From IMG/VR virus record IMGVR_UViG_3300042340_000379, positions 124,001 through 188,000 of that record: a stretch of DNA of 64,000 nucleotides. One strand, 5' to 3'. The notes beneath the pieces are model-generated. The model was given only the letters and a program-made list of their open reading frames with translations, had not been told where the DNA came from and did not search any database. This document shows positions 32,772-62,154 of this stretch, in pieces. Position numbers and translations under genes: made by a program. How positions within the stretch are numbered: position 1 is the first letter of the stretch; each line of letters starts with the position of its first letter.

Positions 32772-35700
32772 ATGGATCCCCTCTTCCCAGAATTAGACCC
32801 GGCTTTAATTGATAACCAGAACTCCGAAGTTCGAGAGCAAATCAGACGGTTAGAAAAATCAACCCCTGAAGATATTGCTCGCCAAGAGTTAACCACCCCT
32901 GACCTTAACTCCATAGGGATTAGTCGGGGGTTTAGACTTCACTACGGAGAAGTATCCGATCGCCCTGGCACACGCTACAACATGCTAGGGCAAAAGATCT
33001 ACGAACCACCGACTCTAGCAATGGAGTCTCAAGTTGGATTTTATGAGCCGGTCAGCGTTCGCGCCAACGTTTCTCTAGACCAATCCCTACAAGTTAGAGC
33101 TGTTAATGCAATCGACTCTATTAACTATGGACGTTCTGTATTAACTGGGCAGCAGCGAACTGTAACGAGTGGCTTAAACACTATGTTTGGGCGGCAGTTT
33201 AGAAGTTTAATGTATGACCAGCAAGTAAGAGCTGCCGGTCTTATGGGGTTAAGCCGAGAAGACACCCGCGCTCTTTTAGGAGAACCTGCAGTTAGAGAAG
33301 GGCTTTATCAAGACGCTGGCTTTAGAACACCCAGCCTTGAATCGATTATGGAGAATATGGGCACCGGGATGCCTAGCGCTGAACGCATCAGTGACATAAA
33401 TAGAATGGGCTTCTACGCCGATCGCTATGCAGATCCTGAGAGCGTTCAGAAACTTTATCGAGAAGTCAACCAACTAAAAAATGCCCTTGGCGATGGAATC
33501 AAATCTGTAGAAAAGCGCTATGCATACCGAAAAGTTAACGGCATGTACGAAAAAGTCCTTGTTGGCTTAAAGGTTGGAGTAAGAAATTACAATGACCTTT
33601 TTGACGGAATGGGTCTCTACAGCGGAACCAGCGCTCCTGCTGTTGAAAGAGAAACTGCTTTTAACTTTACTGTTGACTCTAAGGGCCAAGTAATTGAACT
33701 TAATACTAATAGGGTAATTAGTGGTTCGCTTATGGCCCTTGGGCCGTCCAGCATTTCTACTATTGTGGGTTCCTCTCTTATTGGAGGAGAAGGTCGCCGC
33801 CAAAGTAGTTCGGCTACAGCGCTGGGCCTTTTAGCTACTTACGCCAGGTCATCAGAGCTTGAAGCTCGGCACGGTGTTGTAGATGGTGTGTTTAACACCA
33901 TGATCGCACAAGGAGAATATGGTGCTCTTGGAAGAGTCTTTGCAGAAGCTCTTGTGTCTCGTAATGAGAAGTATGTCGCCAGCCGGGGCTTAAAATTTGG
34001 CGAAGTTGCTGGCCAAATGCTCAGCTCCGTCGGCCATAAAGATTTTAAGAAAGGTATTCATGAACTAATTGAGAGTATTTCCTATCGCGGTCTTGAGTAC
34101 TATTCCAGTCTCCATACTGTATTTAAGGAAAGCTTTGATGAAAACACAGCCCGCATGGAGCTGTTTAGAAACCGGCAGTCTCTTCTTACAGCTGCCTTTG
34201 ACCCTCTTCTAAATTACACGGGTGGGGAAGGCTCCAGATTTGATGGGTTAATTGACACCACAATGAAGCGGGTAGTTGACCTAATTCAATCTGATAGCAG
34301 TACCCAGCGGTTAAAAATTGCAGGTCAGGATGTAGACATTTCTCTATTTGATGACTTAAAAGTTGCGGCTTTAAACATGAGCCCAACAGGTCGAAGTGCT
34401 TACGACTTAAGAAAGAGTCAAGTCAGCCGCTCGATTCTGCAACTTATGATGTCGCCATTCCTAATGCCGCATGAGTCAGGCTACTCAGGGTCTCAGTCTT
34501 CCTCCCGCCTTGGATTGTTTGCCATGTCGGAAACTAGGGGTCAGCGGGGTATGTACGAGCTTTTTGCCATAAGCCCGTCAAAGCATACCCACGGAATGAA
34601 GAGCACAAAGCCTGGTGAGTACTACAAACCTATTGGCTCACAGAGCGCTAAAAGCTCTGTTATGAAATATATTGGCGGATTTTATAAATTTGACGACACT
34701 GCTGCTAAAGTAGCTGAGTTTTATGAGACAAAGACTTTATTTGCAGGTATGCCCTCATTAAAGCGTGCCAAGCTTGATGACATTCAGATTCACATGCAAA
34801 AAGCTGGATATAAAAGTTCTCGAGAGATTATCGAGAAGTATCGAGCAGAGATGCAGCTAAAAGAGGATAAAGATATTGAAGTTCTACTCATGCCATTTAG
34901 AAAGCCTGAGCAGATCTCCCAACGTCTTAAAAACTTGGTAGGGGGTAGACCCATGCTAGAAATAGCAACGGGTCTTCGCCGCGCAGTGATGAGCCAGAGT
35001 GGGCAGCAACTTCGAAGTTATTTCTCTGGAGGAGACTATGGCGTTTCCCTTGATGTGGGGAAAGCGTTAAGCGGCAACATTCCTGCCGCGCTAAATGACA
35101 TCCAGTATCAGCAGATGGAGCAAGAGAGATCGCGCATTATTGCTGAACTGGGTCTAGATGAAAAGAAAATAACGCCGAGACAGCAATCAGAGTTATCTCG
35201 TTTGCTAACCTCTCGTATGCGGGAAATTGAAACTCAGTTTAATGAAGGCGGCGGGTACATTCAAGGTAAAGCCGCTCGCTTAACCATGGTGGGCATGGGC
35301 GTGAACATGCTCTCTGACTTTATGCTCGTCAACCAGGAGTACGTCAACAACACAGCTTTTGGCTATCTACATCATTCCAAGTTTCGAGTTTCAGCTACTC
35401 AAAACGTTCGGTATGAAGGAGTGGGGCGAGTTACAGAAGCTGACCCTTATTTTGACTGGAAGACTAATCGCCTGGCGGAGGTGTTTAAAGCTGGTACCTC
35501 TATCTATCTATCACCTACCCCTCTAAAAAATGAGAGGGCAATGGAGATTCTTAAAAAGACCGCGCAAAGCATGAGGTCTGAGTTTCTTGCTCGAGGCATT
35601 AGCAAACGAGAGAGTGACGCGCAAGTAAGGCGCACGCTTCAAAGCAACTTCAAATTTTTAGAGAGCGTAGACATCAAAGATGGAGAAGTCACCAACGCAA

Positions 35701-38700
35701 CGATGCGGGCGGGTGCGTACTCGTTTGATGGGAATGATATGCGGTTCCAAGGTGAATTGGTTGGTTCCTCCCTCCGTCTTGGAATGCTGCCCACAAATAA
35801 TCGTCAGAGGTTAGGTGAGACTGGATTAAGCGGGGCGACTTCACTTGACTTCTTCGATGTAAAAATCCCCGGTGTAATCCGCTCAGTGTCTAAAGGCTTA
35901 GTTACGGTAGCCAATGACATAAACTTTGCTCCTTCTAGTGGGGGATATGAAGCAGACATTAATTTTCTGGTAACTTCAGATATTCCAAGTGGCTCTAGAT
36001 CCTCTTCTCTTACAAAAGGCCCTTGGTCTATGTATGAAAGTGAATCATTTTGGGCACGCGCTCGAGAGCAGGCTATTCAACATAGTTTTGTTTCTAAGCA
36101 AACAGCTCAAGAAGGGGTGTTTGGAATCTTAAGCCCAACCGCGTTTAAGGGTTACAACTACGAAGCTGGCTTAGATATTCTTAGGGATGCTGAATCTCGA
36201 CGGGATCTGCTAGCTATTCCTGCTGACCAAACTGCTTTTCTACTTGGTATAGCCTTTATGGAAAAAGGCGAGAAAGGCCAGCGGTTAAAAGCGGCTATGC
36301 GTGAGTATGCTAAAACTCAAAGCTTAGGCTCATCTGTCGGTCTTCTATTAGAAGATGTTAACTCGGGGTCTAGCATTGAAAAAATGCGGAATTTAATGCT
36401 CTCCACGCCTGACATTATTGAGTTTGCTGGGGGACAAAGCCTAGACCAAATGGGAGACTACCTTGCTCAACGATTTGAGACAGGAGACTTCGACCCGATT
36501 AAAAAGAGCTTAAACCGCATTGTTGGAAAAGCTCTGGACAAGTCTGTTCAAATGGAGCAGTATGTTGAAGGGCAGTCTAGTCTAGTTAGAACTTTCCAAG
36601 AAGGAGATTTTAGCGTTAGAAGTGCCGGTTTAGTTGCTGATGTACTCAATACAACTCGCCAATTAATTTATGGTGGCATGACTGTAGGTGATGACCCCCT
36701 CCAAGGATATGCTCTTGTAGACAAAGAGAAGGGCGCTCGAGTCGATCGCTTTATTGAAGATAAAGACTTCCGAGCCGCAACTTTAGATATAGCACAAAAG
36801 ATGGGAGTTAGAAGTCTGCTTCCTTCCCAGCTTAAGTTAGAGGGAGCCCTAAGCAGCCTTAAAGAAGGAGACGAACTCTACTCTCAAGTAGAGTCAATGC
36901 TCTATTTAATGCATGGTCATTTTAGTACTTCTCCTTTAGTAGCTCGCGCTTCAAATATGCTACCTAGCAGAATCCTAGTAGCCGCTGGTTCAGAAGATGC
37001 CGTAGCTCTAGAATTTCATTACTCTCTCAACTTAAGCAAGCGAGAGTTTGGCATGTTGCGCGGAACAGGCGTGGACATAGAGAAGTTTACAGACTTACAA
37101 GCCGCTTATGGCGTTGTGGCTACTCACGGCTCAGCCAACAGTACCTCTCGAATGATGCAAGTTATCAGCCCGTTTAGTACTGATAAGACTCAAGCAGGCG
37201 TGGCTAAAACAATGTCCCGTCTTATCGAGGGTTACAACGACTTTAGCGGCAAGTTCAAATTCTTAGGCAGCGTTGGAAATCTCAGCCTTCTTGATGAAGT
37301 TGTTCGGTCAATGGTGACTGGAAAGACCGATCGCACGCTACAGCTAATGGCTAGCTATGACTTAGCTAACAGAGCGCTTCGTCATCAAAAAGGTTTAGGG
37401 CAATTTACTGAGCAGACGGTAATGAACGTCGCCGGGGCCTTTAACCCAGGAAGCCTTGATTTAGACAGTGCTTCATTTAGTCAATTGGCCGACCTGGCTA
37501 ACATTTATGGGGTAAAAGGAAATACTAAAGAAGAGCTAGCCAAAGGGTTACGAGAAACTGGGCCAATACTTGGCAGAGGTATTCCCTACTATGGGCCTTC
37601 AAGAAATCCGTTCGAGATTAAGCGGATGGCAATGGCTCGGGCTGTTATTGACTTATCTAAACGACAAAAACAAAAAGGGCACGGCTCCCTAGTCTTTGGA
37701 GTCACTTCAGATAATGAAGATGTCAGAGACATCATGAAACGGGAGCGACTAAGCGCTTATGGATTTGGCTACTCAGACTTTAGGCAAGCTCTTGATTTAG
37801 TAAGTGATACTCAAACAGGGCGTCTTCTTTCTGACGGGAATGGCGACAAAGATCACGTTCAAAGAATTGCGGGGCGGCTGCAAGATCATGACCGCTCAGT
37901 AGAACTTATGATGGAAAAAGCGGCGGGCACCTCAGACACAGAGTCTTTTGTGGATGTTCTATATAAAGTAGTCTCTGGTGCTCAGCAAGTTATTGAAAAT
38001 ACTGAACGAGGTTCTGATGATTATAAGCGGGCCGAACGCTTAAGAAGTGAGGTCTATCAAACCAAGTCTCTTTTGATGCCTTTTGTTCAAACAGCTCGGG
38101 ATGGGTCGAAAGGAATCATTAGTCTGTATGACCCAACAGAAATGGGCGGTCAGTTACGATTCACCGGAACACCTGCCATTCGCTTGGGTCTTGATGTTCT
38201 GTCTAAAGTCCCCGCCCAGTTTGAGGATCACATTTCTGAGGTTGTAGATCGGCAGCGGCAGATATGGGAGATTCTCCCTGAATTCCAAAGCATTATGGAT
38301 AGGCTCACAACCGGGCCCATCATGGATGCTAACTTAGGTGAGATTTCTGTCATTGAAGAGATGCAGCGCCTGGCTATTCAAAGCCAAGAGGATGCCGCGC
38401 TTCTCTTTGGTAGCGTTATGGCCCAACGATCGCAAGGGGAGAAAATTAAGTACCCTGGCGTTTCCTTTGTTGCAGTAGCTGATTATCTAGCTACTCCTAT
38501 GGAAGCTTTTGTTGGTAGCCGGGTTATGGGAACTGGCTTAGACCAAGTTGTCCGAGATGCCCAAGCTAGCCTAAATGGAGAAGAGCGGAGAAACAATCGA
38601 TGGGAAGCAGAGAGAGAAAGGCTTCTAAAGCGAGCGGTTACTCATAGCCAATCAACTGAAAAATCAGTCCAGAATAAATTTAAGCTGGCCCAGCGTCGGC

Positions 38701-41700
38701 GTATGGAGCTTCTACGCCAGCGAGTAAACATTAGAAAAAACCTTAACGAGAATGTTGGGCGGTTAAAAGAAGAGCAGCGCGTTATTAAAAAAACTCGTGA
38801 GAGAGTTTTTAAGCAAGAACGGGGTGCAAACTACCAAGCGTATAGACTTGATGGGCTTAGCCAAAGATATAACCATGCTCAAGCTGAGATATATGGTGCT
38901 AGAGATAACTCTCAACGAGAACTGAGAGAGCTAAATCCTGAACTCAATCGATTGCGCAAAGATACAAAATTTATGCAGCGGCAGTTTGTTCAAAACAAAC
39001 TTCACCAGTTTGTTGTTGAAGGCCAGCACGTTTCTATCTTTAACAAAGAATTTATTGCTGGAATTGGCGCACGCGATGGAGTTGTGCAAAGCGAGCTACG
39101 AAGCATGATTGCTCAAGCTCCTGAGGGATTTGTCGAAGGACTTAGCTCAGGAGAAATTTCAGACCAAAACTACTATGACAAGTTTGTGTCAGTTCTAAGT
39201 AAAGTAGACCAGCAAGGTCAAAACATCTACAGAGCTGAGCTGGCCGGAATTGAAAGCGCAATGGGCCACGCTCTTAGAGATGGCTCAGGTTCTAGAAGCG
39301 ATCAGCGTCAAATCAAAAAATACATGGGGCGGCGAGCTGCCTTTAACCAAACTCAGCAAATTGGGTTTGACTTCAAACCTCAAGAATTCGCTGCTCTTCA
39401 AAAGCTTCAATCACTGACTGGCTACGTTAACAGAGCGGGTGGCCCTAGCGGCGGCTCTATTGTTAACCAGCAGCACTCAATCCAAAACGTTGAGCGTCTA
39501 AAAAACAAACAAGTCTCTGAAGGCAACCAACTCTCACTAGCTCTTGATGGAAACCAGACCGCGCTAATTGTCTCAATGTATGGCCGGTTTGGCGTGCAGG
39601 GCGGTGACTTTGACGGTGACGCTTACCAGCTCGTCTTTGGATTTAGAGACATTCAAGAGTCCTTAGTTAAATCAATCAACAAACGGAATCAGATGGAAGA
39701 TTCCAAATTGGCCCTTGAGCTTGAAATGGGGAGCGGGGAATATGGCAGAGATGTTCTTTTGCGTCGAGCCCAGCTTAGCAACCAAATTCGAGTTGAACAA
39801 CAAGGAATTGACGGTCTAATCGGAAAACTTGATAACCAATTCCAAATGGCTGGAGAGCAGATAAGCCAAGGTGTTCGTCGTCACGTCTCTTCTTTAACAG
39901 GTGTTCCCTTGTCAATTATGTTGAACAAGGACGTGTACAGTGATGAACAAGTCTCTAATATGATCGAGCAGCAACGGGGGATTACGCCTGGCTTAACCGA
40001 CTTTGGAGATTCTTATGGTGGCGAGGCCACGTCTTACGGCTTCTTATTCAACGACATTAACCAAGACCTTGGAAGTCTAAACGGAAGTCTTGGAGATTAC
40101 CTAGACACTAAATTGGAAGGAAAGCCCTACGGATTAGACAAAGCTCAGCTTAGCCAATTTAAGCAGTTGACAGAAGAAGCCATGTCTAAACTTGACTTGG
40201 TAAACTCAAATGCTTCTGAACGAGCCCAAGCCTTTGGAGTAGAGTTGGGAACTCTAAATAACCTGCGCATGAGTTTGGATACCACCCAAAAGTTCATTCA
40301 GTCAGCGGCGGGTACAGTTCTTGACATGAAGTCTTTTGATTTAATGCAAGATGCAATTGGTTATGTGGGTACTTCTCTAATCGGGGAAGGCTACAACGCA
40401 ATCACCAGCATGATAGGCCGGTCTACCCTAGCGCGAACTTTAGCTCATGGACTTGGCGCTGAGTCAATGGTCGGCTTAGACACCGCAGCCCTAAATCTTG
40501 GAGGACAAATTCAAGAAAGACTTGATTATCTATTTGCTGGTGGAGAGAAAGCAAATACGTCCAGCAATATTAAAGAGAAGTTCGCAGTCGATGAGATAAA
40601 ACGCACCGCCTATTTTGCTCAAGAGAAAAGCCAACAAATTAGCGGTAAGCTGACCATGATTCAGCAAATGATCCGAGACTCTCTAAAACCCAAAGAGGCT
40701 GGAGGTCTTATTGGAGCCATAGTTGATAACTCTGCAGATGGGGAAGCGTTCAGAGAAAAGTTTGACCGACTAGAGAAAAAGGAAGAGCGTTTAGACGCGC
40801 TACGAAACTTTGTGTCTACTAGAGCCGTTACCTCAATGGTAGATACAAATGAGCGGGGGCTCATCAACGCTTTTGGTGCCATCTTCTTAATGGCTGATTA
40901 CACCAAGGAAAGTTCTCCTGAGAAAATGCTTAGCGACAAATCTGATCGCTATAGTGTTCTGCGCCAAACTCGAGAGCTATATGAAAAACAGTCTTCCAGG
41001 CTTCAGCAAGGTAAAGGTTTAAGTTCAGATTTAGATACTATCACGCGCCTCCGTCTTCAAGACCCAGAGTTTAGAGACAAGATGGTAAATGATGATGGGT
41101 TCCTAATCCGTCAGACCGTTGTTGACTTAATCAATAGTGCTACTGCACAAGAGACAACCTCCAAATACTTAGGTTACGATGCTAATGATAGAGTTAGACA
41201 AGCCAACGTAATAAGAGAACAGTACATTGGTGCTTTAGCATCAGAGCGTGGACTTCTCGATGCTTCGTCTGACTTCTACTTTAAAAACGAGCAGCATCAA
41301 ATGGCTATGATGAGTGCTCTTAATATCAAAGAACAGGACATTCTTGGCTATACTCAAGGCCAAGTTCAGAATGTATTTTCAGATAGTAATGCAGCTTTTA
41401 AAGCTTTAACGGAAAGAACATTTGTTGAGTCAACTTATCTAGGAATGGGACAGGAAGACTTAGAGTTCTCCAGAAATGTCATTCAGGCTGGTCGCTCCTT
41501 AGAGTTTATGGAGTTTGGGAACCAAATAGCATTTGCGCCTTTTGCAGCAGCTCAAAGCGAAAACCTTGTAGCTATAGAACAGTTAATGCGTCGGGGTAAA
41601 TTAGATGACCCTGCTTTAATGAGAGAGGTTCAAATCAACAGCTCGGCAAGATTGTTTGATGCAATCGCCAAGGTCAGCACAAAACTTACCTCTCAGTATG

Positions 41701-42854
41701 GTTCTTTAGAATCAGCCATTAGTAAAGAGGAAGTGTATAAAGGCTATTCTCAAATGGCAGAGCTGGCTGGAGTATTTGATGTTAGTCGTGATGAATCTAA
41801 CATGCTTTCTTTAGCCATGGCAGCTAAACCTGACGGTAAGCAGTCTATCTTCGAGCAGCTTGCTGATTTGTCAGCTGGTCGCGCTAATGTTGAAGAGAAA
41901 TATAACCAAATTTCAGATATTCACCAGGAAATGAGTACTGCTACTGGAACTCGTAAACAGTTTCTAGAGCAGCATCTAGCTCTACTTGAAGGTTCACTTG
42001 ACTCTTATAGACAAGGAATTTCAACAAATGACACCAGCGCAGTAAGAACCGCACTGGCTGAAATTGGAAATAAAGAACGTCAATTTAGAACTGATCAGTT
42101 TAAAAAAGACGAGCGCGGCAGGCGGCTATTAATTCATAGCGCTGGAATGATGCACGTCGCGTCAGGTTCTCAAAGTATGGGCGTGGTCAATACGCTTGGT
42201 CTGTTTGCAGCCCCTGTTGTTGGAGCTGCTCTTATGAGTGGCGCTGGATTAGATGAGCGGCTAGTCCTGGGCGGGTACGATTTAATGCAGGGTCTATCTA
42301 CAGCTGAAGGATTTGCGGATAACAAAATGGCTCAGGCGACTAACAGCATGTTTATCATGAGCCGATTACGCCAGCAAATGGCCGAGCAAGAAAGTCTATT
42401 TCTAGGTTCTGTAAAAGGCGTAGCGACAGAAGCACTTTACACAGGCCTAGCAGGGCTCGCCAGCCAAGCGTCCACCAGCCTTATGCGAGCAGCCGGGGCG
42501 CGGCAGGCAGCAGGAGGTTTAGGATCCGCACTTGCTGAAGCAGTCGTGACAGCGGCTGCTTTAGCTTTTTCTCGTAAAGGAAGCCAGTATGGCGTTCAAG
42601 ACGAGGATTACAGTAGTCTAATGGCGCAATCTTTGTTAGACATGGCTCAGTCTACAGAGAACATGATACAAGCTATGATTGAGAGGGCCCAAGACATTGA
42701 GGTCGAAACAGAAGACCAAATTGTCACGTTTGACTTTGATGCATCTATGGCACCCACAGAATATGAAGAGCGGGTGACTGCTGGGTGGATTGAGTTCTCT
42801 GTTGCCTCTGATGAGTTTGATTCTGTCTACTCTGAAATTGGAAATTACGCTTAA
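32772..42854 (+). CDS. Giant protein with two-barrel RNA polymerase motifs (putative virion RNA polymerase / ejected protein)
   Basis: 3360 aa; GGDFDGD (DFDGD at 39606-39620, residues 2279-2283) preceded by VNRAGGP; hydrophobic Gly/Ala-rich C-terminus; located among virion genes. Confidence 0.7.
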   Translation: MDPLFPELDPALIDNQNSEVREQIRRLEKSTPEDIARQELTTPDLNSIGISRGFRLHYGEVSDRPGTRYNMLGQKIYEPPTLAMESQVGFYEPVSVRANVSLDQSLQVRAVNAIDSINYGRSVLTGQQRTVTSGLNTMFGRQFRSLMYDQQVRAAGLMGLSREDTRALLGEPAVREGLYQDAGFRTPSLESIMENMGTGMPSAERISDINRMGFYADRYADPESVQKLYREVNQLKNALGDGIKSVEKRYAYRKVNGMYEKVLVGLKVGVRNYNDLFDGMGLYSGTSAPAVERETAFNFTVDSKGQVIELNTNRVISGSLMALGPSSISTIVGSSLIGGEGRRQSSSATALGLLATYARSSELEARHGVVDGVFNTMIAQGEYGALGRVFAEALVSRNEKYVASRGLKFGEVAGQMLSSVGHKDFKKGIHELIESISYRGLEYYSSLHTVFKESFDENTARMELFRNRQSLLTAAFDPLLNYTGGEGSRFDGLIDTTMKRVVDLIQSDSSTQRLKIAGQDVDISLFDDLKVAALNMSPTGRSAYDLRKSQVSRSILQLMMSPFLMPHESGYSGSQSSSRLGLFAMSETRGQRGMYELFAISPSKHTHGMKSTKPGEYYKPIGSQSAKSSVMKYIGGFYKFDDTAAKVAEFYETKTLFAGMPSLKRAKLDDIQIHMQKAGYKSSREIIEKYRAEMQLKEDKDIEVLLMPFRKPEQISQRLKNLVGGRPMLEIATGLRRAVMSQSGQQLRSYFSGGDYGVSLDVGKALSGNIPAALNDIQYQQMEQERSRIIAELGLDEKKITPRQQSELSRLLTSRMREIETQFNEGGGYIQGKAARLTMVGMGVNMLSDFMLVNQEYVNNTAFGYLHHSKFRVSATQNVRYEGVGRVTEADPYFDWKTNRLAEVFKAGTSIYLSPTPLKNERAMEILKKTAQSMRSEFLARGISKRESDAQVRRTLQSNFKFLESVDIKDGEVTNATMRAGAYSFDGNDMRFQGELVGSSLRLGMLPTNNRQRLGETGLSGATSLDFFDVKIPGVIRSVSKGLVTVANDINFAPSSGGYEADINFLVTSDIPSGSRSSSLTKGPWSMYESESFWARAREQAIQHSFVSKQTAQEGVFGILSPTAFKGYNYEAGLDILRDAESRRDLLAIPADQTAFLLGIAFMEKGEKGQRLKAAMREYAKTQSLGSSVGLLLEDVNSGSSIEKMRNLMLSTPDIIEFAGGQSLDQMGDYLAQRFETGDFDPIKKSLNRIVGKALDKSVQMEQYVEGQSSLVRTFQEGDFSVRSAGLVADVLNTTRQLIYGGMTVGDDPLQGYALVDKEKGARVDRFIEDKDFRAATLDIAQKMGVRSLLPSQLKLEGALSSLKEGDELYSQVESMLYLMHGHFSTSPLVARASNMLPSRILVAAGSEDAVALEFHYSLNLSKREFGMLRGTGVDIEKFTDLQAAYGVVATHGSANSTSRMMQVISPFSTDKTQAGVAKTMSRLIEGYNDFSGKFKFLGSVGNLSLLDEVVRSMVTGKTDRTLQLMASYDLANRALRHQKGLGQFTEQTVMNVAGAFNPGSLDLDSASFSQLADLANIYGVKGNTKEELAKGLRETGPILGRGIPYYGPSRNPFEIKRMAMARAVIDLSKRQKQKGHGSLVFGVTSDNEDVRDIMKRERLSAYGFGYSDFRQALDLVSDTQTGRLLSDGNGDKDHVQRIAGRLQDHDRSVELMMEKAAGTSDTESFVDVLYKVVSGAQQVIENTERGSDDYKRAERLRSEVYQTKSLLMPFVQTARDGSKGIISLYDPTEMGGQLRFTGTPAIRLGLDVLSKVPAQFEDHISEVVDRQRQIWEILPEFQSIMDRLTTGPIMDANLGEISVIEEMQRLAIQSQEDAALLFGSVMAQRSQGEKIKYPGVSFVAVADYLATPMEAFVGSRVMGTGLDQVVRDAQASLNGEERRNNRWEAERERLLKRAVTHSQSTEKSVQNKFKLAQRRRMELLRQRVNIRKNLNENVGRLKEEQRVIKKTRERVFKQERGANYQAYRLDGLSQRYNHAQAEIYGARDNSQRELRELNPELNRLRKDTKFMQRQFVQNKLHQFVVEGQHVSIFNKEFIAGIGARDGVVQSELRSMIAQAPEGFVEGLSSGEISDQNYYDKFVSVLSKVDQQGQNIYRAELAGIESAMGHALRDGSGSRSDQRQIKKYMGRRAAFNQTQQIGFDFKPQEFAALQKLQSLTGYVNRAGGPSGGSIVNQQHSIQNVERLKNKQVSEGNQLSLALDGNQTALIVSMYGRFGVQGGDFDGDAYQLVFGFRDIQESLVKSINKRNQMEDSKLALELEMGSGEYGRDVLLRRAQLSNQIRVEQQGIDGLIGKLDNQFQMAGEQISQGVRRHVSSLTGVPLSIMLNKDVYSDEQVSNMIEQQRGITPGLTDFGDSYGGEATSYGFLFNDINQDLGSLNGSLGDYLDTKLEGKPYGLDKAQLSQFKQLTEEAMSKLDLVNSNASERAQAFGVELGTLNNLRMSLDTTQKFIQSAAGTVLDMKSFDLMQDAIGYVGTSLIGEGYNAITSMIGRSTLARTLAHGLGAESMVGLDTAALNLGGQIQERLDYLFAGGEKANTSSNIKEKFAVDEIKRTAYFAQEKSQQISGKLTMIQQMIRDSLKPKEAGGLIGAIVDNSADGEAFREKFDRLEKKEERLDALRNFVSTRAVTSMVDTNERGLINAFGAIFLMADYTKESSPEKMLSDKSDRYSVLRQTRELYEKQSSRLQQGKGLSSDLDTITRLRLQDPEFRDKMVNDDGFLIRQTVVDLINSATAQETTSKYLGYDANDRVRQANVIREQYIGALASERGLLDASSDFYFKNEQHQMAMMSALNIKEQDILGYTQGQVQNVFSDSNAAFKALTERTFVESTYLGMGQEDLEFSRNVIQAGRSLEFMEFGNQIAFAPFAAAQSENLVAIEQLMRRGKLDDPALMREVQINSSARLFDAIAKVSTKLTSQYGSLESAISKEEVYKGYSQMAELAGVFDVSRDESNMLSLAMAAKPDGKQSIFEQLADLSAGRANVEEKYNQISDIHQEMSTATGTRKQFLEQHLALLEGSLDSYRQGISTNDTSAVRTALAEIGNKERQFRTDQFKKDERGRRLLIHSAGMMHVASGSQSMGVVNTLGLFAAPVVGAALMSGAGLDERLVLGGYDLMQGLSTAEGFADNKMAQATNSMFIMSRLRQQMAEQESLFLGSVKGVATEALYTGLAGLASQASTSLMRAAGARQAAGGLGSALAEAVVTAAALAFSRKGSQYGVQDEDYSSLMAQSLLDMAQSTENMIQAMIERAQDIEVETEDQIVTFDFDASMAPTEYEERVTAGWIEFSVASDEFDSVYSEIGNYA

Positions 42855-54370: not shown

Positions 54371-54443
54371 ACCCTTTAATTCATAGCCGAGCCACAGGCT
54401 TAATTGTTCATGGCAAAACGCAAACATTACCTGGAGAACATCT

Positions 54444-54644: not shown

Positions 54645-54662
54645 TCCCAATCTTTTTATCAT

Positions 54663-55216
54663 GCACGCCCAGTAAAGCCTGGGCTTTTTTGTGTCTAAAA
54701 CTATCTGGAGAACATCAAATGTCTACTCAAATCTTTTCCACTGCCCAAGCTTGCGCCGATGAAATCGCCAAGCTTCGCGCCCAGGGCGTTGCTTGCCGTC
54801 TTCAGAAAGTTGAAGGCGGTGGCTTCACCGTCGTTCTCATGAACGGTAAAGCCCAGCCTCAGAGCAAAACTAAAGCTAAAACTGATCCTGCTCCTCACAT
54901 CCAAATTCGCCAAACTCTCGATGGCGGCGTGTGGTGCAACAAGGGTGCAGGGTTCTACCCTGTCGTCAAGTTCACCTTGGATGAGGCTATCAAAGCTTTG
55001 ACTGATCGGTCTTACGTAAAGACCGACAAGAACCTGGATACGAAGAACTACAACACGACTTGGGAGTTTAGTCTTAAGTCTCTTGTAGAAAAGGATGAAG
55101 CTGAAGAGTGGGGCAATCAAAACGATATGGACGATGAGCTGTACATGAATCGCAACGGCCTCCTCTAGTCAACAACCTTTTATCACGCACGCCCAGTAAA
55201 GCCTGGGCTTTTTTGT
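54663..55216 (+). repeat. Intergenic repeat B: two identical 30 bp hairpin/T-run copies (54663-54692, 55187-55216)
   Basis: GCACGCCCAGTAAAGCCTGGGCTTTTTTGT. Confidence 0.9.
54719..55168 (+). CDS. Early-type hypothetical protein
   Basis: GGAGAACATCAA-ATG; 149 aa. Confidence 0.7.
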   Translation: MSTQIFSTAQACADEIAKLRAQGVACRLQKVEGGGFTVVLMNGKAQPQSKTKAKTDPAPHIQIRQTLDGGVWCNKGAGFYPVVKFTLDEAIKALTDRSYVKTDKNLDTKNYNTTWEFSLKSLVEKDEAEEWGNQNDMDDELYMNRNGLL

Positions 55217-55238
55217 ACTTATTTAGCGGAGAACTTCA

Positions 55239-55418
55239 ATGGCCCTCTTTCTCTTCATTCTCTTTTTCATTTCCCTCTGTCTTTTCTTTGCAGAGGACAA
55301 AGTAAGCCAACCCAGAATTACGCCTGACATGCTCCTTAGCAAAAAAGGCAAGCCTCTATATGGGGCAACTTTGCAGGCTCGCATCGAAAAGCTAGAGCGA
55401 GCTGGGTACATCCTTTAG
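55239..55418 (+). CDS. 59 aa membrane-anchored protein sharing a 31 aa motif with the downstream polymerase
   Basis: Not in the ORF track; GGAGAAC RBS; MALFLFILFFISLCLFFAEDKVSQPRITPDMLLSKKGKPLYGATLQARIEKLERAGYIL. Confidence 0.75.
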   Translation: MALFLFILFFISLCLFFAEDKVSQPRITPDMLLSKKGKPLYGATLQARIEKLERAGYIL

Positions 55419-55492
55419 TTCACAGCCGAGCCACAGGCTTAATTGTTCATGGCAATTTTCAAGCAACAACTAATCAACTGGAGAACAAACCC

Positions 55493-58400
55493 ATGAAATC
55501 CTTCACCAAATCTCTGAATTCTTTTGTTACCCGCTCCTTCTCTGTGGGTAAGCGCCAAATGATCTCTAAGGTCAAAATCGTTCACTCTAAGCGCGAGTTC
55601 ATCTCGCGTGTTTCTGGCACCTTTCGCCAGCGCTTGAACCCTGCTACTCCAAAGTCCATTTTTGCTTGGGACGATGTTCAGCTCTCCTTAGCCTTTACTT
55701 ATGGCCAAGGTTCTCTAGGAATCAAAGCTGACCGCGCCAACGCTGGCATTGGGTTTGGTAGTGATACCAAACCTAAATCTAAATCTGTTAAGTCCGATTC
55801 CATCAAAATCGCACACACCTTTAAGGAGATCCTCGCCCAAACCAAAGCTACCGCTGTCAAAGTCTTCGAGGCCATTTCCACCGTTTCTAAACTGATTACT
55901 CCCGATCTTCTGCTCTCTTCTACAGGTAAGCAGCTCTATGGAGCTGCTCTTAAAAACCGGATTGCCAAACTTGTTCGTGAGGGCTACGCAGCCCCTGTTT
56001 CTCAACCTGCAGCGGTAAAGGCCGTTGACTTCATGGCGCTTGCTCAAGAGCGCTGCGCCCAAAGCCTTGCTGCGATCGAAGCAGCTATGGGCTTCACATC
56101 CACGGGCACCGTTGTGGCCATGCTTCAATCCGGCCAGGAGCCTGCGCCCATTGCGCGGCAGTCCGCCTCAAATATGGAGAACATCTCATTGTTTGAACTC
56201 AGGGCAAAAGAATTTCCAGCTCCTTCTGTCGAGGAGCTAATGTCTGACCTAAATGGCGATCGCGCCACCCGCGCTGAAAAGTGCAAAGCCATCTTGGCTA
56301 AGCACAACCTCAACACAGTTGGTGAGCTGATCGCTCGCGGCATGGTGTCTCGCACCCGCAAAGACTTCTGGCTCGATAGTGCAAGCACTGCGTTCAGTGT
56401 GATGCTACTGGGCCACACTCTTGGCCAAATGCCCGCGCCTCTGGACTTCAAGGCTGGGAATACCTACCTGGTAGGTTTCCCTCTGTTTGATCGCACCTCT
56501 GGCGACAAGCAGATTTCCCCGTACAAGTGCGTCATAGGAGATATCGATCTCCTGATGGCGTCTGTTCGTAGAGAAGAGCACGACATAAAGAACCTATCTT
56601 CTCCTGCTACCAAGAAGGTGTTTAAGAAGCACTTTAAGGTGCTAGAAGATAACTGCAAAGCCCTGGGCCTGTGGTTGTCTAAGGACGAAGTGGCTAACAT
56701 GGCCGCTGCGTTGGCCATTAATGAAGTGGCTACCAAGCCCACCACTTTCGCGGTGCTGGCTTCCCACCTCTGCGAAGTCCTTGATGCTATGGGCATGATG
56801 CCCAACCGCGTGTATGCGGTGAATGCTGCGTGGAACCTTCCCCGCTACAAAGCGGATCGCGTTATTGTGCGTAAGTTGGTAACCGCACTGCTGCGGGCCC
56901 AAGAGGGCATCGGCATGACAGGGTTCAAGTTCATCGACATGTCCACCAGCGAGCAAACTGGTGAGCTATTTGATGAAGTCGTTATCTGTGGCCAACGCTT
57001 TGTCATGGATGACGAAGGCGTTATCTTTGATGACGCAGGTACATCAAAACGGCTAAACCAGATAATGTTGGCTGCTCCCATTAAGGTAGGCCGCAGTCTA
57101 CACCCCAACGAGTTCTCTATCTTGAGCGCTCACGACGTGTTGTTGTATCTGCTGGACAACATTGTGCTGCCCATGCTCAACCGAAAGGATGTCAAATCTG
57201 ACAAGAGCTTGGAAATCAGCCGTGTTGAGGAAACCAACGCTCGTGCTGCCCAGTCCATCAAATCGTTTATTGGCAAATCCATGCCTCTAAACGAGCGGGC
57301 TGTTGCGCTTGGTGTTGAAGATGCTGCCTCCAGCATTCTGACCAGCGGCGAAATCAGCTGCGTTGTCAAGTGGCATCAATCTCTCTTCCGTCGCAACATT
57401 GCGGCTGAGGGTTCAGCAGAGATCGCCATCTTCAAAGAAGGCATGCTAGTTGGGCCTGATAGTCCCTACAAACGCTCGGCTGATGCTACCGAGTATATGA
57501 TCTTTAGCCAAATGGAGTTAAAGACCTCCACCAATTTCACCGACTATCACCCTCTCATCGAGCCTATGATCGCTCATGGCAAAGTGATTCAGCCTTTTGG
57601 CAACATGAATGCTGTAAGCCTTTCTGCTCACGGTACTCACTATGCCAACCTTGATGTGAGCATTCAGAAAGAAGCTGTCAAAGCTTTCTGGGCTAACCAA
57701 GGCCTTGATGAGCAACAGCTGCGCTCTAAGTTCAACCTTGAAGGTGTAGTCGGTGATGTGTGGATGCACATTGCTGAAGAAACCCTCAACTTCTTGTCCT
57801 ACAAGGGCTCTAAGCGTTTCAAGCGCTCGGCTAACTTGTACGCTCAAGTCACCAGCTTCGCGTTTGAAGAGACCAGCCGCTTCCAGTGGTCTGGTCACGT
57901 TGATCACCAGATCACCGGCCTGGCGCTCAAGGCTGTGTTAGCTCCTAGCTACGTTTTCTCTGGGCCTGGTATGGCCTATATGAACTCGCACAAGCGTGCT
58001 CAATACGAGATGCGCTACCCCTTGGCTGGTGGCATGCATGACTACTACGATCGCGCTGCTGTGTTCAGTAACTTCGCGATTGATGATACTGCTATCATCA
58101 CCAATCCTCTCACGGGCTGGAGCCATATTGACCTGGACATCAAAGTCCGGGAAGGGCAGGAGACTGGCTTGTTTATCGTGAACGAACATGGCCATCAGGT
58201 TCCTCTAAAAGCTGAGCACAATGGTGTGCTTTGCAAAATTCGTTTCCGCACTGTCGATAAGTTCTCCGTTAACGGCGTATTGGAGTGTCGCCTCTTTTAT
58301 AAAGTGTCTGAGTACGACTTCAAACTGCGGGCTGGCTATAAAGCCATGACTACCTATCATGACGGGTCGATCTTTGACCATAACGCCTACGCTCCCGAGT

Positions 58401-60982
58401 GGGACATCATCATCCCTGGTGATGCCAACAAAACCCTCGACCTTTTAACTTGCTTCCTCCCCGAGGCTGCTGAGTCATTCGGTCGCGCTCCTGAGGGCAC
58501 TTTGGTTGATGGCGTTGATGTACGTGCCCTGCTGCGTTCACTTAATGCTGAGGCATTTGGTCGTGAGGGCATCATTAAAGATGCGCCCAACGACAGCCTC
58601 TATGTCAACATGCTCATGTTGAATGAGGGTCGCTACGAGCAACTCCGTAAGTTGTTCATGACCGCATTTGGTCAAGTTATATGGATGAGCGTTGAGTCTG
58701 TAGAAATGCAGATCTTTGTCAACAAATTCTATTCTGCCAACGTTGCTGGTGGTGGCAAATGGCGCGAGCTGTCTGAAGCTGAGCTGGAAACAGTTGCTAA
58801 AGATGGTCTACCCAAGGGTGCTCGCGGCTTCTGCGACACCGCTGATATCAATGACCAGAGCAACATTCTGGTTACCTACACTGAGAACGGGAAGTGCATG
58901 TCCCTTCACCGTCAGTGGGTCTACGCTTCCACGCCCGAGCTTGGCATGTACATGCTAGGTAAGCCTGAGTACACAACTGTGAGCCAGGCCGTTTCTGAAT
59001 CCAGCGTTATGGGCAACGTCATCTATGACCTGGCCCTACGTAGCAACAAAGCTGCGTTGGAATTCGTCAACCGTGGCGAAATCAACCGCGTGCGCTACTC
59101 TCTTATCCATCGCCTAGCAAAAGGCCTTCCTATTGCTATTGATGGCGGCGAAATTCCTGTGATGAAAATCCAGGGCTCGATCGCTGAAATCGTGGGTAGT
59201 TGCAGCGCCAACTTGGCTGCTGCATACGCGGAAGGGCCTAACCAGTTCTTCCAAGTACTCCTGGAAATCTGCCAGGACAAAGTGCTGCGCTTTGAAGCCG
59301 ACAACAGCACCTGGGTTAGCATCTACCTCCCTCTTCTCGCTTCTTACGGCGGGCAGGATCTTGAATCCAACGAAGGCATGACTCTTGCTAGCAAAGTCTA
59401 TGAGTTGATGACCTCTTGGTACAACGGGGCCGACCCTAAGTCTCAGGGCATCAAAGTCATCGCGGGGGAAATCTCCAAGATGATGAATAAGTTGGCCGAT
59501 GGTGGCCGGATGCAGAAGTCTTTGACCTACGGCCCTAAAGGCGTAGGTTTCAAGGTCGCCGCATTGCCCAACATTCCTACTGGGGAAGTGTGGGTCTATG
59601 CTGGCGGTGAAGTCTTTGCCAAAATGCGCAAGCTGTTTGGCAAAGACTTTGCTGAAAACGCCAAAACTGGCGATAGCTACATCGGTCTGGTGCGTGCGCC
59701 TATGACTCGTGTTGCTGTGCTCAAAGTCGTAGTCATCACCAAAGATGACAACCGCGCCTTGGCCTACAAACTCAATGGCGTGCAGGGCTACATCAGCCCA
59801 TTCTCCCAGTATTTCAACATGGGAGACTTTGACGGTGATGGTGACTTGTCTATGGACGTTAGTGATATCGTCCGTAGCGGTGAGCTTCAACAGGACTCTT
59901 TTGCGTCCATGCTCAAGTTCCAGCGGGAAACCCTGGGCTACGACATGATGCTACCCGAGTTCTGGAAGTCTGCTGCACCCGAGCAGTACTACGCCGACCA
60001 CTTCTATGTACAGAGCTACACCTCTGTCATGGCTAAAATCGGTGGGCGCGGCCTGAACTTGGAATCTTCCGAGAAGGCCAACGTCATCACCCGTGCTCAA
60101 CTGCTAGCCGGTGAGCACGGTGCAATCGGTCAGCAGACCGGCTATGTGTCCAGCTCATATCAAACCCAGTTCTTTATCACGCTGGCAGCTGAGATTCTGG
60201 GTCACCACAACGTAGCTGCATTCGAGTGGATTAAAGGCTCCACCTATCAAACCCAGGCCTTGTACGAAGTAGCGTTAGGCGGCTACTCTCCTGATATGTG
60301 CCGCGTGGCGTTTGGTCTTCTTGACCGCGCCTTCCGTTTGAGCACCACTCAAGATTGGTGGCTAAAGCGTGTTGACGCTGAGGTTGCCGGTATGTTGCTT
60401 GACGGTACCAAGCACACAGCTTCTTCTCTCCTAGGTACCGAGCCTATGGATAAAGAGAAGACCCTGTTCACTTCCCTGAGTGAAGGCCAAGTGTTCCCCG
60501 CAATGCAGGCTTGCGGTTTTGGCTGGAATGGCTTTGAGGATGACCGCAACCAAGTGCAACAGTTTGTTAAAGCTGCTGCGCTCGCTGGCGTTGCTAAAAA
60601 GCGTGTCAGCGAAATCAAGAACGATGATGCTGGAATTGGTAGCGGCACCTACCAAAAGCTGGTGAAAACCTACGGCAAGAACATGGCCCTTGTCATGTGT
60701 CTTGCTCAACGTCTAATGGACATCAGCCGTAATAAGGCTGAGTTTGGTAAGGACTACGACAACGAACTCCGCGCTGAACTCGACCAAATGCTCAAAGGTG
60801 TTAAAAGCGATTCTATTTCCGTCGATCTCTATCGTCGGATTGAGAAGACCCTAGACGACTCTGTGTCCGCAGAAGTCGTAAGCTATGACAGCGCTGCTAT
60901 CAACAAGCTTTGCCGCTTTGTTGAAACCGAAGACGCTGCTCCCATTACTCTGGAGGTTGCTGCCCAAGTTATCGCCAATTAA
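55493..60982 (+). CDS. Single-chain two-barrel DNA-dependent RNA polymerase candidate (non-virion / early)
   Basis: 1829 aa; beta'-like LVRAP and NMGDFDGD (DFDGD at 59825-59839, residues 1445-1449); beta-like FKLRAGYKAM...WDIIIP; GGAGAACA RBS. Confidence 0.8.
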   Translation: MKSFTKSLNSFVTRSFSVGKRQMISKVKIVHSKREFISRVSGTFRQRLNPATPKSIFAWDDVQLSLAFTYGQGSLGIKADRANAGIGFGSDTKPKSKSVKSDSIKIAHTFKEILAQTKATAVKVFEAISTVSKLITPDLLLSSTGKQLYGAALKNRIAKLVREGYAAPVSQPAAVKAVDFMALAQERCAQSLAAIEAAMGFTSTGTVVAMLQSGQEPAPIARQSASNMENISLFELRAKEFPAPSVEELMSDLNGDRATRAEKCKAILAKHNLNTVGELIARGMVSRTRKDFWLDSASTAFSVMLLGHTLGQMPAPLDFKAGNTYLVGFPLFDRTSGDKQISPYKCVIGDIDLLMASVRREEHDIKNLSSPATKKVFKKHFKVLEDNCKALGLWLSKDEVANMAAALAINEVATKPTTFAVLASHLCEVLDAMGMMPNRVYAVNAAWNLPRYKADRVIVRKLVTALLRAQEGIGMTGFKFIDMSTSEQTGELFDEVVICGQRFVMDDEGVIFDDAGTSKRLNQIMLAAPIKVGRSLHPNEFSILSAHDVLLYLLDNIVLPMLNRKDVKSDKSLEISRVEETNARAAQSIKSFIGKSMPLNERAVALGVEDAASSILTSGEISCVVKWHQSLFRRNIAAEGSAEIAIFKEGMLVGPDSPYKRSADATEYMIFSQMELKTSTNFTDYHPLIEPMIAHGKVIQPFGNMNAVSLSAHGTHYANLDVSIQKEAVKAFWANQGLDEQQLRSKFNLEGVVGDVWMHIAEETLNFLSYKGSKRFKRSANLYAQVTSFAFEETSRFQWSGHVDHQITGLALKAVLAPSYVFSGPGMAYMNSHKRAQYEMRYPLAGGMHDYYDRAAVFSNFAIDDTAIITNPLTGWSHIDLDIKVREGQETGLFIVNEHGHQVPLKAEHNGVLCKIRFRTVDKFSVNGVLECRLFYKVSEYDFKLRAGYKAMTTYHDGSIFDHNAYAPEWDIIIPGDANKTLDLLTCFLPEAAESFGRAPEGTLVDGVDVRALLRSLNAEAFGREGIIKDAPNDSLYVNMLMLNEGRYEQLRKLFMTAFGQVIWMSVESVEMQIFVNKFYSANVAGGGKWRELSEAELETVAKDGLPKGARGFCDTADINDQSNILVTYTENGKCMSLHRQWVYASTPELGMYMLGKPEYTTVSQAVSESSVMGNVIYDLALRSNKAALEFVNRGEINRVRYSLIHRLAKGLPIAIDGGEIPVMKIQGSIAEIVGSCSANLAAAYAEGPNQFFQVLLEICQDKVLRFEADNSTWVSIYLPLLASYGGQDLESNEGMTLASKVYELMTSWYNGADPKSQGIKVIAGEISKMMNKLADGGRMQKSLTYGPKGVGFKVAALPNIPTGEVWVYAGGEVFAKMRKLFGKDFAENAKTGDSYIGLVRAPMTRVAVLKVVVITKDDNRALAYKLNGVQGYISPFSQYFNMGDFDGDGDLSMDVSDIVRSGELQQDSFASMLKFQRETLGYDMMLPEFWKSAAPEQYYADHFYVQSYTSVMAKIGGRGLNLESSEKANVITRAQLLAGEHGAIGQQTGYVSSSYQTQFFITLAAEILGHHNVAAFEWIKGSTYQTQALYEVALGGYSPDMCRVAFGLLDRAFRLSTTQDWWLKRVDAEVAGMLLDGTKHTASSLLGTEPMDKEKTLFTSLSEGQVFPAMQACGFGWNGFEDDRNQVQQFVKAAALAGVAKKRVSEIKNDDAGIGSGTYQKLVKTYGKNMALVMCLAQRLMDISRNKAEFGKDYDNELRAELDQMLKGVKSDSISVDLYRRIEKTLDDSVSAEVVSYDSAAINKLCRFVETEDAAPITLEVAAQVIAN

Positions 60983-60987
60983 TCGCT

Positions 60988-61141
60988 AGGGCCCTATAGG
61001 GCCCGCAAAAGTCCGATTGGGGCCCAACGCGGGCCCTTTACGTCCCGTGAAAGTCCTTTTAGGGCCCGCGTTGGGCCTTTCATGTCCCGTCGAGGGCCCT
61101 AAACGTCCCGCAAAAGTCCGATTAGGGCCCGTCAAGGGCCC
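60988..61141. repeat. parC-like array 2: phased GGGCCC/GTCCC boxes, inverted relative to array 1
   Basis: AAAGTCCGATTAGGGCCCG is the exact reverse complement of CGGGCCCTAATCGGACTTT at 52284-52302; 10-11 bp period. Confidence 0.75.
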
Positions 61142-61473
61142 AACCCCTATTTTGCTGCGCTCTACCCTGCGCGGTTAGAGGGGGAATGTTAGTTTTATTT
61201 GTTTGTTGTTAGCAGGTTTAGCTAATGGCAGTGGGTCTGTGTGTTATGCGGTTGGGCGGCAGGATGTAGATGCTAATAGGTATTTATGGCAGCACTATTA
61301 TTTAATTGGAGCCTGGTCGCAGCGATCGCGCTGTGTATCTGGCTCGACAAATGATTTGCCGACTGCCGTCCCCTGTGCGCGATGCGTTGGGACGGCAGCG
61401 GGAGAAAGAAACGCAAATTGCCGTGACTTAATGTCCGGCAGTTTGTAATCCGTTGAATTAGAGACTTGCTGCT

Positions 61474-62154
61474 ATGTCTACTTCCTCTTCTGTCTACACC
61501 GAAAATTTCTCCCTAGAGCACGAAGTCACTTGCAGCCACTTTGCTGCGCAGCTCGCAGCCAAAACTGAAGGTCGCTGTCTGGAAGTCTCTCGTGAGCTCG
61601 TCCGTGGGAAAGATCACGACGCGCTCTTTAGCCTAAGCTGCATTTTCCCAACCGAGAGCGATAATGGGGTTGTAGTACAAATCGCTCTCAGTGGGTACCT
61701 AGATGCGTCTAGTATGAACATCAATGGAAACCTGTATAGGATGGCCGTGCCGTTCACAAAAGGTGACCAGCGCCAGACTGACAAGCCCATGCGAATCAAG
61801 ACTGGGGCTATGAAGCCTCAGGAGTTCAAAGGTCTTCTCTCTGACGAGACCATTCTCGAGTTGCAGAAGTGGGCGGAGTTGAATGCTGGCGCAAAACGCG
61901 CTAGCTTTGACCTGGAGATTCCTGAAGGGGTGGATCTGTATTTCACTTTGTCCTTCCGTAAAGGAAAGGAAAACCCTTATGCAGTAGACCCGCTGCATAT
62001 CCTGAAAATGGATATCATTGGTGGTCTCTTGCAGGAGGTTGAGAAGCCCTATGGGACAAAAGTTGGGGGTGTGGAGGATTCCCGTTTAGCTGCAAAGAGA
62101 GCTGCCCTTGCTGCTTCCACCCTGCCCACGCCTGCTGACGATGACGTGATGTAA
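61474..62154 (+). CDS. Hypothetical protein (possible SSB-like, acidic C-terminus)
   Basis: 226 aa, beta-rich, ends PADDDVM. Confidence 0.6.
   Translation: MSTSSSVYTENFSLEHEVTCSHFAAQLAAKTEGRCLEVSRELVRGKDHDALFSLSCIFPTESDNGVVVQIALSGYLDASSMNINGNLYRMAVPFTKGDQRQTDKPMRIKTGAMKPQEFKGLLSDETILELQKWAELNAGAKRASFDLEIPEGVDLYFTLSFRKGKENPYAVDPLHILKMDIIGGLLQEVEKPYGTKVGGVEDSRLAAKRAALAASTLPTPADDDVM

Follow-up and report, generated by a model that had tools for sequence, protein, structure and literature searches.

A very probable single-chain two-barrel RNA polymerase, missed by annotation libraries, in Ma-LMM01-like cyanophages

How do cyanophages of the Ma-LMM01 type time the transcription of their genes? 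The Ma-LMM01 transcriptome study left unexplained how its three temporal classes come about when their sigma-70-like promoters are near-identical and host transcription hardly changes (PMC5780444); it recognised no phage polymerase (PMC5780444), and the genome of the close relative MaMV-DH01 is said to lack an RNA polymerase (RNAP) and to rely on host transcription (PMC9927357). A 64,000-nucleotide (nt) stretch of IMG/VR virus record IMGVR_UViG_3300042340_000379 (positions 124,001 to 188,000; hereafter the window) bears on this question: it encodes a protein of 1,829 amino acids (aa) that an initial annotation, made from the sequence alone, read as one of two single-chain two-barrel RNAPs in this phage. 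We find that the 1,829-aa protein is very probably such an enzyme and that it belongs to a sequence family of its own, not recognised by annotation libraries, in Ma-LMM01-like cyanophages.

Pfam-A returned no RNAP family for the 1,829-aa protein at E ≤ 1 and a single spurious match (E 0.084), and PHROGs returned no match. Searches of PDB sequences with phmmer and with profiles (target, A2, A3 and A4) gave nothing or chance matches only; among 50,697 phage records no match turned up by megablast or tblastn, for the core even at E ≤ 10; and an ESM-atlas feature search with the N-terminus was uninformative. A word-indexed search of 5.8 billion proteins recovered four homologues: one identical fragment, one protein of 2,230 aa (44% identity), and two of 2,545 and 2,841 aa (34% identity) in which a RecD/Pif1-like helicase precedes the homologous region and NADAR and Macro domains follow it. 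A profile of the word-search proteins (A2), run over 1.84 billion cluster representatives, matched 81 proteins at E ≤ 1e-3, of which 26 reached E ≤ 1e-30. These are mostly 1,100–4,100 aa long, with a few shorter fragments, and D[FLYW]DGD is present in most; a 1,995-aa gene adjoining P0010 fell outside the family by hidden Markov model. The family is very diverged and is missed by Pfam, PHROGs and PDB sequence searches.

The shared core was aligned across 57 sequences (A3; mean column identity 19%), which places the following features on the gene, with conservation given as a fraction of that alignment.

55480..55483, + strand: GGAG ribosome-binding site (RBS), 10 nt before the ATG of the 1,829-aa open reading frame (ORF), read directly
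55493..60982, + strand: polymerase-like ORF, 1,829 aa, with an ATG start and no internal stops; counterpart of Ma-LMM01 gp064
55493..57736, + strand: N-terminal 748 aa of this ORF (alignment A1), with no Pfam matches
57737..60589, + strand: polymerase core, aa 749–1699, with predicted beta-like barrel region, connector, beta'-like barrel and long helix (AlphaFold2 and structural matches)
58319-58348, + strand: FKLRAGYKAM, aa 943–952, placed by translation
58322..58342, + strand: K944-L-R946-A-G-Y-K950, basic residues of the beta-like barrel (K, R and K each 57/57)
58403-58417, + strand: DIIIP, aa 971–975, placed by translation
58421..58432, + strand: D977-A-N-K980 (GDANKT), second invariant element of the beta-like half (D977 and K980, 57/57)
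58964..58981, + strand: PEYTTV with invariant E1159 (57/57), in the connector between the barrels
59693..59704, + strand: R1401-A-P1403-M, counterpart of beta' NRAPTLH (R and P, 57/57); RAP itself is aa 1401–1403, 59693-59701
59822..59839, + strand: G-D1445-F-D1447-G-D1449 (GDFDGD, aa 1444–1449), metal-binding triad of the beta'-like barrel (56–57/57)
60092..60205, + strand: long helix, aa 1534–1571 (model residues 786–823, by DSSP of the model), candidate bridge helix

The strings on which the initial annotation relied (FKLRAGYKAM, DIIIP, RAP and GDFDGD in one 1829 aa chain) are each found at their translated coordinates, and most of them prove meaningful. K944, R946, K950, D977, K980, E1159, R1401, P1403, G1444, D1445, D1447 and G1448 are invariant (57/57), and D1449 is kept in 56 of the 57 sequences. 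Chance co-occurrence of the motifs can be dismissed, because the catalytic motifs are invariant at such low mean identity. DIIIP does not hold up in the same way: its D971 is kept in only 18 of 57 sequences, and the conserved element near it is D977/K980, six residues later. The DxDxD triad of the beta'-like barrel is preceded by [RK]xP, as is characteristic of the two-barrel (double-psi beta-barrel, DPBB) superfamily, and 41 residues separate P1403 from D1445. The conservation stops short of the N-terminus: aa ~285–748 are common to the three closest homologues only (alignment A1), and distant family members align only from about aa 730–770 on in the profile search.

AlphaFold2 run on A3 gave a model of aa 749–1699 with a predicted local distance difference test score (pLDDT) of 90.5 and a predicted template-modelling score (pTM) of 0.90; a four-sequence alignment gave no usable model (pLDDT 37.6). 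The fold is predicted with confidence to comprise a beta-like barrel, then a beta'-like barrel and a long helix. The two predicted barrel regions, in one chain with the beta-like half first, follow the superfamily's plan of paired DPBB regions that share one active site. Foldseek found 260 PDB matches to the core model at E ≤ 1e-3, and all of the best 50 are cellular-type RNAP large subunits (Rpb2/beta, beta'); a Foldseek-independent search of 48,161 PDB representatives left the top list unchanged. The best-matching Swiss-Prot model is that of the Kluyveromyces lactis killer-plasmid RNAP (6.8e-10, query 20–721), and the best 30 are all RNAP subunits. In the ESM atlas, the shapes nearest to the core are single-chain proteins with both Pfam Rpb2_6 and Rpb1_2; one cluster of neighbours has the automatic name ‘RNA dependent RNA polymerase domain’. 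No PolD chain occurs in the top 50 of the 48,161 representatives or among the Foldseek matches listed. We therefore rejected a replicative DNA polymerase or PolD-like identity (archaeal PolD DP2), given also that Ma-LMM01 has separate replication genes.

The model and the alignments agree on where the active site would lie. Comparison of A3 with Escherichia coli beta' by hhalign sets V-RAPM...GDFDGD on residues 418–468 (NRAPTLH...NADFDGD; E 0.011, 51 columns), with RAPM on 424–430 and GDFDGD on NADFDGD at 458–464; the position is exactly right and the score weak. The same comparison with E. coli beta gave no meaningful alignment. K944, R946 and K950 lie on predicted strands (model residues 196–198 and 201–208), within the part aligned structurally to Rpb2 760–1104. 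The long helix is 38 residues in length, its A..Q...VG..Y pattern is conserved across the family, and the structural alignments to Neurospora QDE-1 and plant RDR2 span it, reaching model residues 862–871; in the model it is a candidate bridge helix. By analogy with cellular RNAP, QDE-1 and gp64 of phage P23-45, the triad D1445/D1447/D1449 would hold the catalytic Mg2+, R1401 would sit near the sugar of the nucleoside triphosphate, and K944/R946/K950 from the other barrel would hold its phosphates. Taken together, the AlphaFold2 model, the structural matches and the invariant catalytic motifs bear out the initial annotation, which had itself proposed structure prediction as a check: by fold and active site, a single-chain two-barrel polymerase is highly probable.

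Whose polymerase is it? Homology and gene order identify the window as part of a distant Ma-LMM01-like cyanomyovirus. Eight window ORFs match Ma-LMM01 in conserved order, and the capsid protein is ~30% identical to those of Ma-LMM01, MaMV-DC and a Microcoleus phage, with no other match in the phage collection. At the same relative positions and in the same orientation as the 1,829-aa ORF and a second giant ORF of 3,360 aa, Ma-LMM01 has two unannotated giants: gp080 (3,561 aa), beside a portal-like gene, and gp064 (1,672 aa), ~9 kb further on. Neither tblastn nor hmmsearch linked the 1,829-aa protein to gp064. An hhalign comparison of A3 with gp064 did so (probability 96.9%, E 1.7e-10, 406 columns), pairing motifs that read RTPM and GDADGD in gp064 and aligning the PEYTTV block too. 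By synteny and profile comparison, gp064 is the counterpart of the 1,829-aa protein and a remote member of its family. Its counterpart in MaMV-DC, A0A075BUT7, is the best viral structural match to the core model (4.6e-17, TM 0.42/0.47), and a 172-kb related metagenomic contig has an Alp7A-like gene, small ORFs and a giant gene arranged as in the window.

The counterpart in Ma-LMM01 also brings expression data. In Table S3 of the transcriptome study (PMC5780444), log2 fragments per kilobase of transcript per million mapped reads at 0/1/3/6 h are 0 / 1.58 / 7.50 / 8.05 for gp064 and 0 / 0 / 7.32 / 8.49 for gp080, both classed as ‘middle’ (B5). The gp064 transcript plateaus at 3 h like those of replication genes (PMC5780444); the capsid (gp086) and sheath (gp091) transcripts climb to 13–14 at 6 h and are late (B4), and the early cluster gp054–063 stands at 5–8 by 1 h (PMC5780444). 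A 42-bp tandem repeat separates gp064 from the start of this cluster, which lies just downstream. The timing of gp064 suits a non-virion enzyme better than a structural protein, with time points that are coarse.

On balance, and with modest conviction, we favour the explanation that the 1,829-aa protein is a non-virion RNAP, a DNA-dependent enzyme for phage transcription made once infection has begun, which would transcribe part of the phage genome without the host RNAP. Several points weigh against this reading. Links to characterised RNAPs are weak at the sequence level (hhalign E 0.011–0.07), and the basic motif has the spacing K-x-R-x3-K as against K-x3-R-x3-K in cellular beta. The 748 N-terminal residues are unexplained; they may carry contacts to promoter, DNA or partners. 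In the Ma-LMM01 transcriptome study, sigma-70-like motifs were found upstream of every temporal class and none specific to the phage (PMC5780444), which either argues against a large phage-RNAP regulon or means that phage motifs were missed, and no recurring phage promoter motif was found in the window. Finally, the domain fusions of relatives, described below, suit DNA repair, priming or injected counter-defence as well as transcription.

The second giant ORF has its own set of polymerase-like features.

32772..42854, + strand: companion giant ORF, 3,360 aa, intact; counterpart of gp080 and candidate second (virion) polymerase
38412..38489, + strand: aa 1881–1906, SVMAQRSQGEKIKYPGVSFVAVADYL, resembling beta' 336–361
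39429..39446, + strand: N-R-A-G-G-P, aa 2220–2225; R2221 and G2223 invariant in the family
39603..39620, + strand: GDFDGD, aa 2278–2283 (GGDFDGDAY, aa 2277–2285), invariant in 8/8 and in gp080

Its similarity to gp080 is direct (BLASTP 3e-11, in collinear pieces), and it has eight homologues. Pfam and PHROGs scans of both giants yielded nothing useful, and an ESM-atlas feature search with the middle of the 3,360-aa ORF was uninformative. A beta'-like motif, QRAxGEKxKYPGxS, within aa 1881–1906 (QRSQGEKIKYPGVSFVAVADYL) is conserved in 8/8 family members; hhalign paired this segment with beta' 336–361 twice (E 0.018 and 0.058), in single comparisons that are statistically weak. NRAGGP is possibly the counterpart of beta' NRAP, and the three beta'-like motifs occur in the right order, with an insertion of ~310 aa. 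Comparison of the family with beta by hhalign found nothing, and no convincing beta-like barrel was identified. A gene of this type adjoins, and is divergent from, a Mu-like portal/head module in 3/3 relatives, as in the window. From these motifs, a second two-barrel polymerase is plausible, and the motifs and portal-adjacent position would fit a virion-packaged one. The [RK]xP filter of a 2024 survey of two-barrel RNAPs would exclude this ORF. Nothing indicates that the two giants are paralogues or duplicates: BLASTP and hhalign between them align the DFDGD motif alone, and GDFDGD is the only segment of the 3,360-aa protein that aligns to the 1,829-aa family (hhalign E 0.0028). If both are polymerases, the portal-adjacent protein would be the likelier virion-delivered enzyme of a two-polymerase programme as in P23-45. 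The scheme of the initial annotation, with one enzyme injected and one made early, is plausible by analogy.

The polymerase core is embedded in larger proteins in a number of relatives. It is fused to RecD/Pif1-like superfamily 1 (SF1) helicases at either end, to an AlkB-type dioxygenase module of the 2-oxoglutarate-Fe(II) (2OG-Fe(II)) oxygenase type, and to DUF4326, NADAR and Macro, in proteins of up to 4,116 aa. Such fusions occur among P0003, P0004, P0013, P0035, P0042, P0046 and P0016, with helicase, AlkB, NADAR, Macro or DUF4326 domains in P0003, P0004, P0035, P0042 and P0046; next to the homologue P0002, DprA is encoded, and the contigs around P0013 and P0017 are short. The fused modules act on DNA or remove ADP-ribose and call to mind the injected ‘polyvalent’ proteins. 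The paper on that class names N4-type RNAP modules only, with no two-barrel polymerase fusions (PMC5512222), and the 1,829-aa protein itself has no accessory Pfam domains and lies outside the structural module. Because of these fusions, two rivals to a non-virion transcriptase stay under consideration: a helicase-assisted synthase and a virion-delivered enzyme. A broader scenario is doubtful but conceivable. Here, a head-packaged beta'-like enzyme of ~3,400 aa would start transcription in Ma-LMM01-like cyanomyoviruses and a gp064-type enzyme would take over, and the wider gp064-type family, through its SF1 helicase/AlkB/NADAR/Macro fusions, would comprise ‘repair-coupled’ polymerases able to use ADP-ribosylated or alkylated phage DNA.

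The first rival, which we consider rather unlikely, is that the 1,829-aa protein is no transcriptase and instead synthesises RNA or primers, with the help of a helicase, on single-stranded or damaged phage DNA. It could then prime replication, couple synthesis to repair, or counteract a defence by ADP-ribosylation or alkylation of DNA. The fusions to helicases, AlkB, NADAR and Macro are what such an enzyme might be expected to have, DprA beside P0002 points the same way, and of the closest solved structures, QDE-1 and RDR2, the former uses single-stranded DNA with helicase and RPA (bioRxiv 10.1101/2020.03.07.982082). However, the related Ma-LMM01 already encodes its own primase, helicases, clamp loader and DNA polymerase, PolD is absent from the top structural matches, and YonO, phi14:2 gp66 and P23-45 gp64 and gp96 are all transcriptases (PMC5467207, PMC10770324).

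In the second rival the fold and chemistry are the same, but the 1,829-aa protein is packaged and injected, like the N4 virion RNAP or a ‘polyvalent’ pilot protein, and is the earliest-acting enzyme, whether in place of the 3,360-aa protein or alongside it. The giant multidomain relatives (up to 4,116 aa) do resemble injected polyvalent proteins (PMC5512222), and gp064 lies directly upstream of the early cluster gp063–gp054 and is itself no early transcript, as expected if the protein were pre-made. The 1,829-aa protein, however, is without those accessory domains, its gene lies outside the head and tail modules, with the 3,360-aa ORF as the portal neighbour, and the gp064 transcript shows no late rise of the kind seen for structural genes. 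We judge this reading unlikely.

RNA-dependent RNA polymerase activity, making for example double-stranded or antisense RNA, is very unlikely as the physiological one. Eukaryotic RDR2 and QDE-1 are the top structural neighbours and the ESM-atlas cluster bears a matching name, but this is a double-stranded DNA phage in which no RNA-silencing partners were seen, and QDE-1/RDR2-type enzymes transcribe DNA too. Structural rank cannot decide template preference. That the protein is a catalytically dead relic kept for a structural role is hardly credible: it would be compatible with the large unexplained N-terminal region, with nothing specific in its favour, and none of the catalytic residues varies among the 57 sequences despite their 19% identity, the signature of selection on activity.

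How might the gene itself be controlled? One candidate signal lies just upstream.

55407..55455, + strand: 49-nt element with the short hairpin GAGCC-ACA-GGCTT, 38 nt before the ATG of the 1,829-aa ORF

A second copy, 92% identical, lies at 54368-54416, upstream of the ATG of a small ORF at 54444; a 28-nt core is exact in both copies, with 0 matches expected by chance. The element was not found in related loci. It is a candidate promoter or regulatory site for the 1,829-aa gene. A 54-nt terminator-like cassette, with the hairpin GCCCAG-TAAAGC-CTGGGC and a T-run, occurs at 54639 and 55163. The cassettes that the initial annotation described in this region are thus real, with the 49-nt element before the ATGs at 54444 and 55493 and the hairpin cassette at 54639 and 55163. 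Its proposal that host-type promoters are kept fared less well: a scan of 48.5–64 kb found 11 sigma-70-like sites, against 16.2 +/- 3.8 in shuffled sequence, and hence no enrichment. The GGAGAAC context of the RBS of the 1,829-aa ORF is the same ahead of the adjoining small ORFs, and 54368-55455 forms a modular set of small genes, each ORF led by a GGAGAAC-type RBS.

Other repeated elements surround the gene. Iterons of ~21 nt, each built on a GGGCCC palindrome (7 copies found), form two arrays at 52260-52400 and 60988-61141, one directly upstream of an Alp7A-like actin gene and the other immediately past the polymerase stop codon; both resemble the centromeres or operators that serve actin-type segregation systems. 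The 42-bp tandem repeat of Ma-LMM01 after gp064 is in a place equivalent to that of the array past the polymerase gene. Two tandem 59-nt units, 93% identical, each containing an ATG, a short reading frame and a GGAG that resembles an RBS, lie at 52987-53114 in the gap between divergent gene blocks. Between genes downstream of the polymerase (61360-63520), CTGCCG...CGGCAG hairpins are followed by TTTGT, and GGCAGTTTGTAWTC occurs three times there and nowhere else exactly in the window (4 occurrences with up to 2 mismatches, 0.44 expected); these could be terminators or phage-specific signals. The G+C content of the polymerase gene is 0.515, compared with 0.447 for positions 1–55000 of the window and 0.454 for the 3,360-aa ORF; a different origin or a composition constraint is possible.

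Other genes identified in the window are as follows.

9097-12171, − strand: lysozyme-like and M23 peptidase protein, 1,023 aa, probably a tail-associated cell-wall hydrolase
13543-17070, − strand: tail sheath, 1,174 aa, with sheath homology in the last ~500 residues
21150-22478: major capsid protein
28503-29924: Mu-like portal
44317-44832: baseplate-wedge-like protein
50848-51138, − strand: small ORF downstream of the Alp7A-like actin gene
51145-52227, − strand: Alp7A/ParM-like actin (Pfam ALP_N and Alp7A_like_C; PHROG ‘partition protein’)

The sheath is unusually long. The Alp7A-like actin is kept beside the polymerase region in related contigs, which suggests that these phages are maintained as plasmids are, or position their DNA inside the cell. 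Outside this group, two uncharacterised proteins of the Acinetobacter jumbo phage vB_AbaM_ME3 match the core model in BFVD (A0A172Q0S6, 1.6e-7; A0A172Q021, 2.0e-6) and may be another pair of unannotated two-barrel polymerases.

These results have implications for how such phages are described. Single-chain two-barrel RNAPs offer a rare view of how cellular RNAP and the eukaryotic silencing polymerases arose, and few families have been characterised: YonO, crAss gp66, and P23-45 gp64 and gp96. The protein described here would add a further one, with 81 diverged cluster representatives and unusual fusions. In the broader, doubtful scenario above, Ma-LMM01-like phages, which have been described as reliant on host transcription, would run a two-polymerase programme of their own. 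With two conserved giant DFDGD proteins, the puzzle of three temporal classes from near-identical promoters can be put to a direct test in phages that grow in culture and that matter for toxic Microcystis blooms.

How does this enzyme compare with those already known? Its closest named counterparts, Ma-LMM01 gp064 and MaMV-DC A0A075BUT7, are, like gp080, unannotated ‘hypothetical proteins’, and gp064 is strongly diverged from it. The eukaryotic silencing enzymes QDE-1 and RDR2 (PDB 7y7p, 5fsw, 7w82) are 10–14% identical. The RNAP of the K. lactis plasmid pGKL2 (UniProt P05472) and other beta-beta' fusions have beta-like then beta'-like barrels in one chain, as here, but are recognisable by Pfam RNAP models, whereas the 1,829-aa protein is not: RNA_pol_Rpb2_6 and RNA_pol_Rpb1_2, which cover cellular-type beta/beta' and fusions including YonO-like ones, gave no match at E ≤ 1. 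SPbeta YonO (PMC5467207) and crAss-like phi14:2 gp66 are phage enzymes of the same single-chain two-barrel kind; among the matches to the core model, YonO is missing from the best 30 in Swiss-Prot and 6VR4 from the top 50 in the PDB. Thermus phage P23-45 pairs two single-chain two-barrel RNAPs, the non-virion gp64 (nvRNAP) and gp96, a virion RNAP (vRNAP) fused to the tape-measure protein (TMP) (PMC10770324), so the two-polymerase idea is not new in kind. To gp64 and gp96 (PDB 8f72, 8f5m, 8h2n, 8h2m) the 1,829-aa protein shows no likeness beyond DxDGD (hhalign, 16–17 columns round this motif, E 0.04 and 0.07), in agreement with the published remark that these families have little else in common (PMC10770324). 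It is also three times the length of gp64, and here the candidate virion enzyme, of 3,360 aa, is encoded beside the portal gene of a myovirus rather than being a tape-measure fusion as in P23-45. The accessible part of a 2024 survey of viruses with at least two two-barrel RNAPs has no Microcystis or LMM01 entry. Prior specialist recognition of the 1,829-aa family is possible, and it may coincide with ‘Cyano_RUMTOR_01356’ (Chaban et al. 2024, Suppl. Data 4). Single-chain two-barrel phage RNAPs are a known kind, and what seems new here is this family and its setting.

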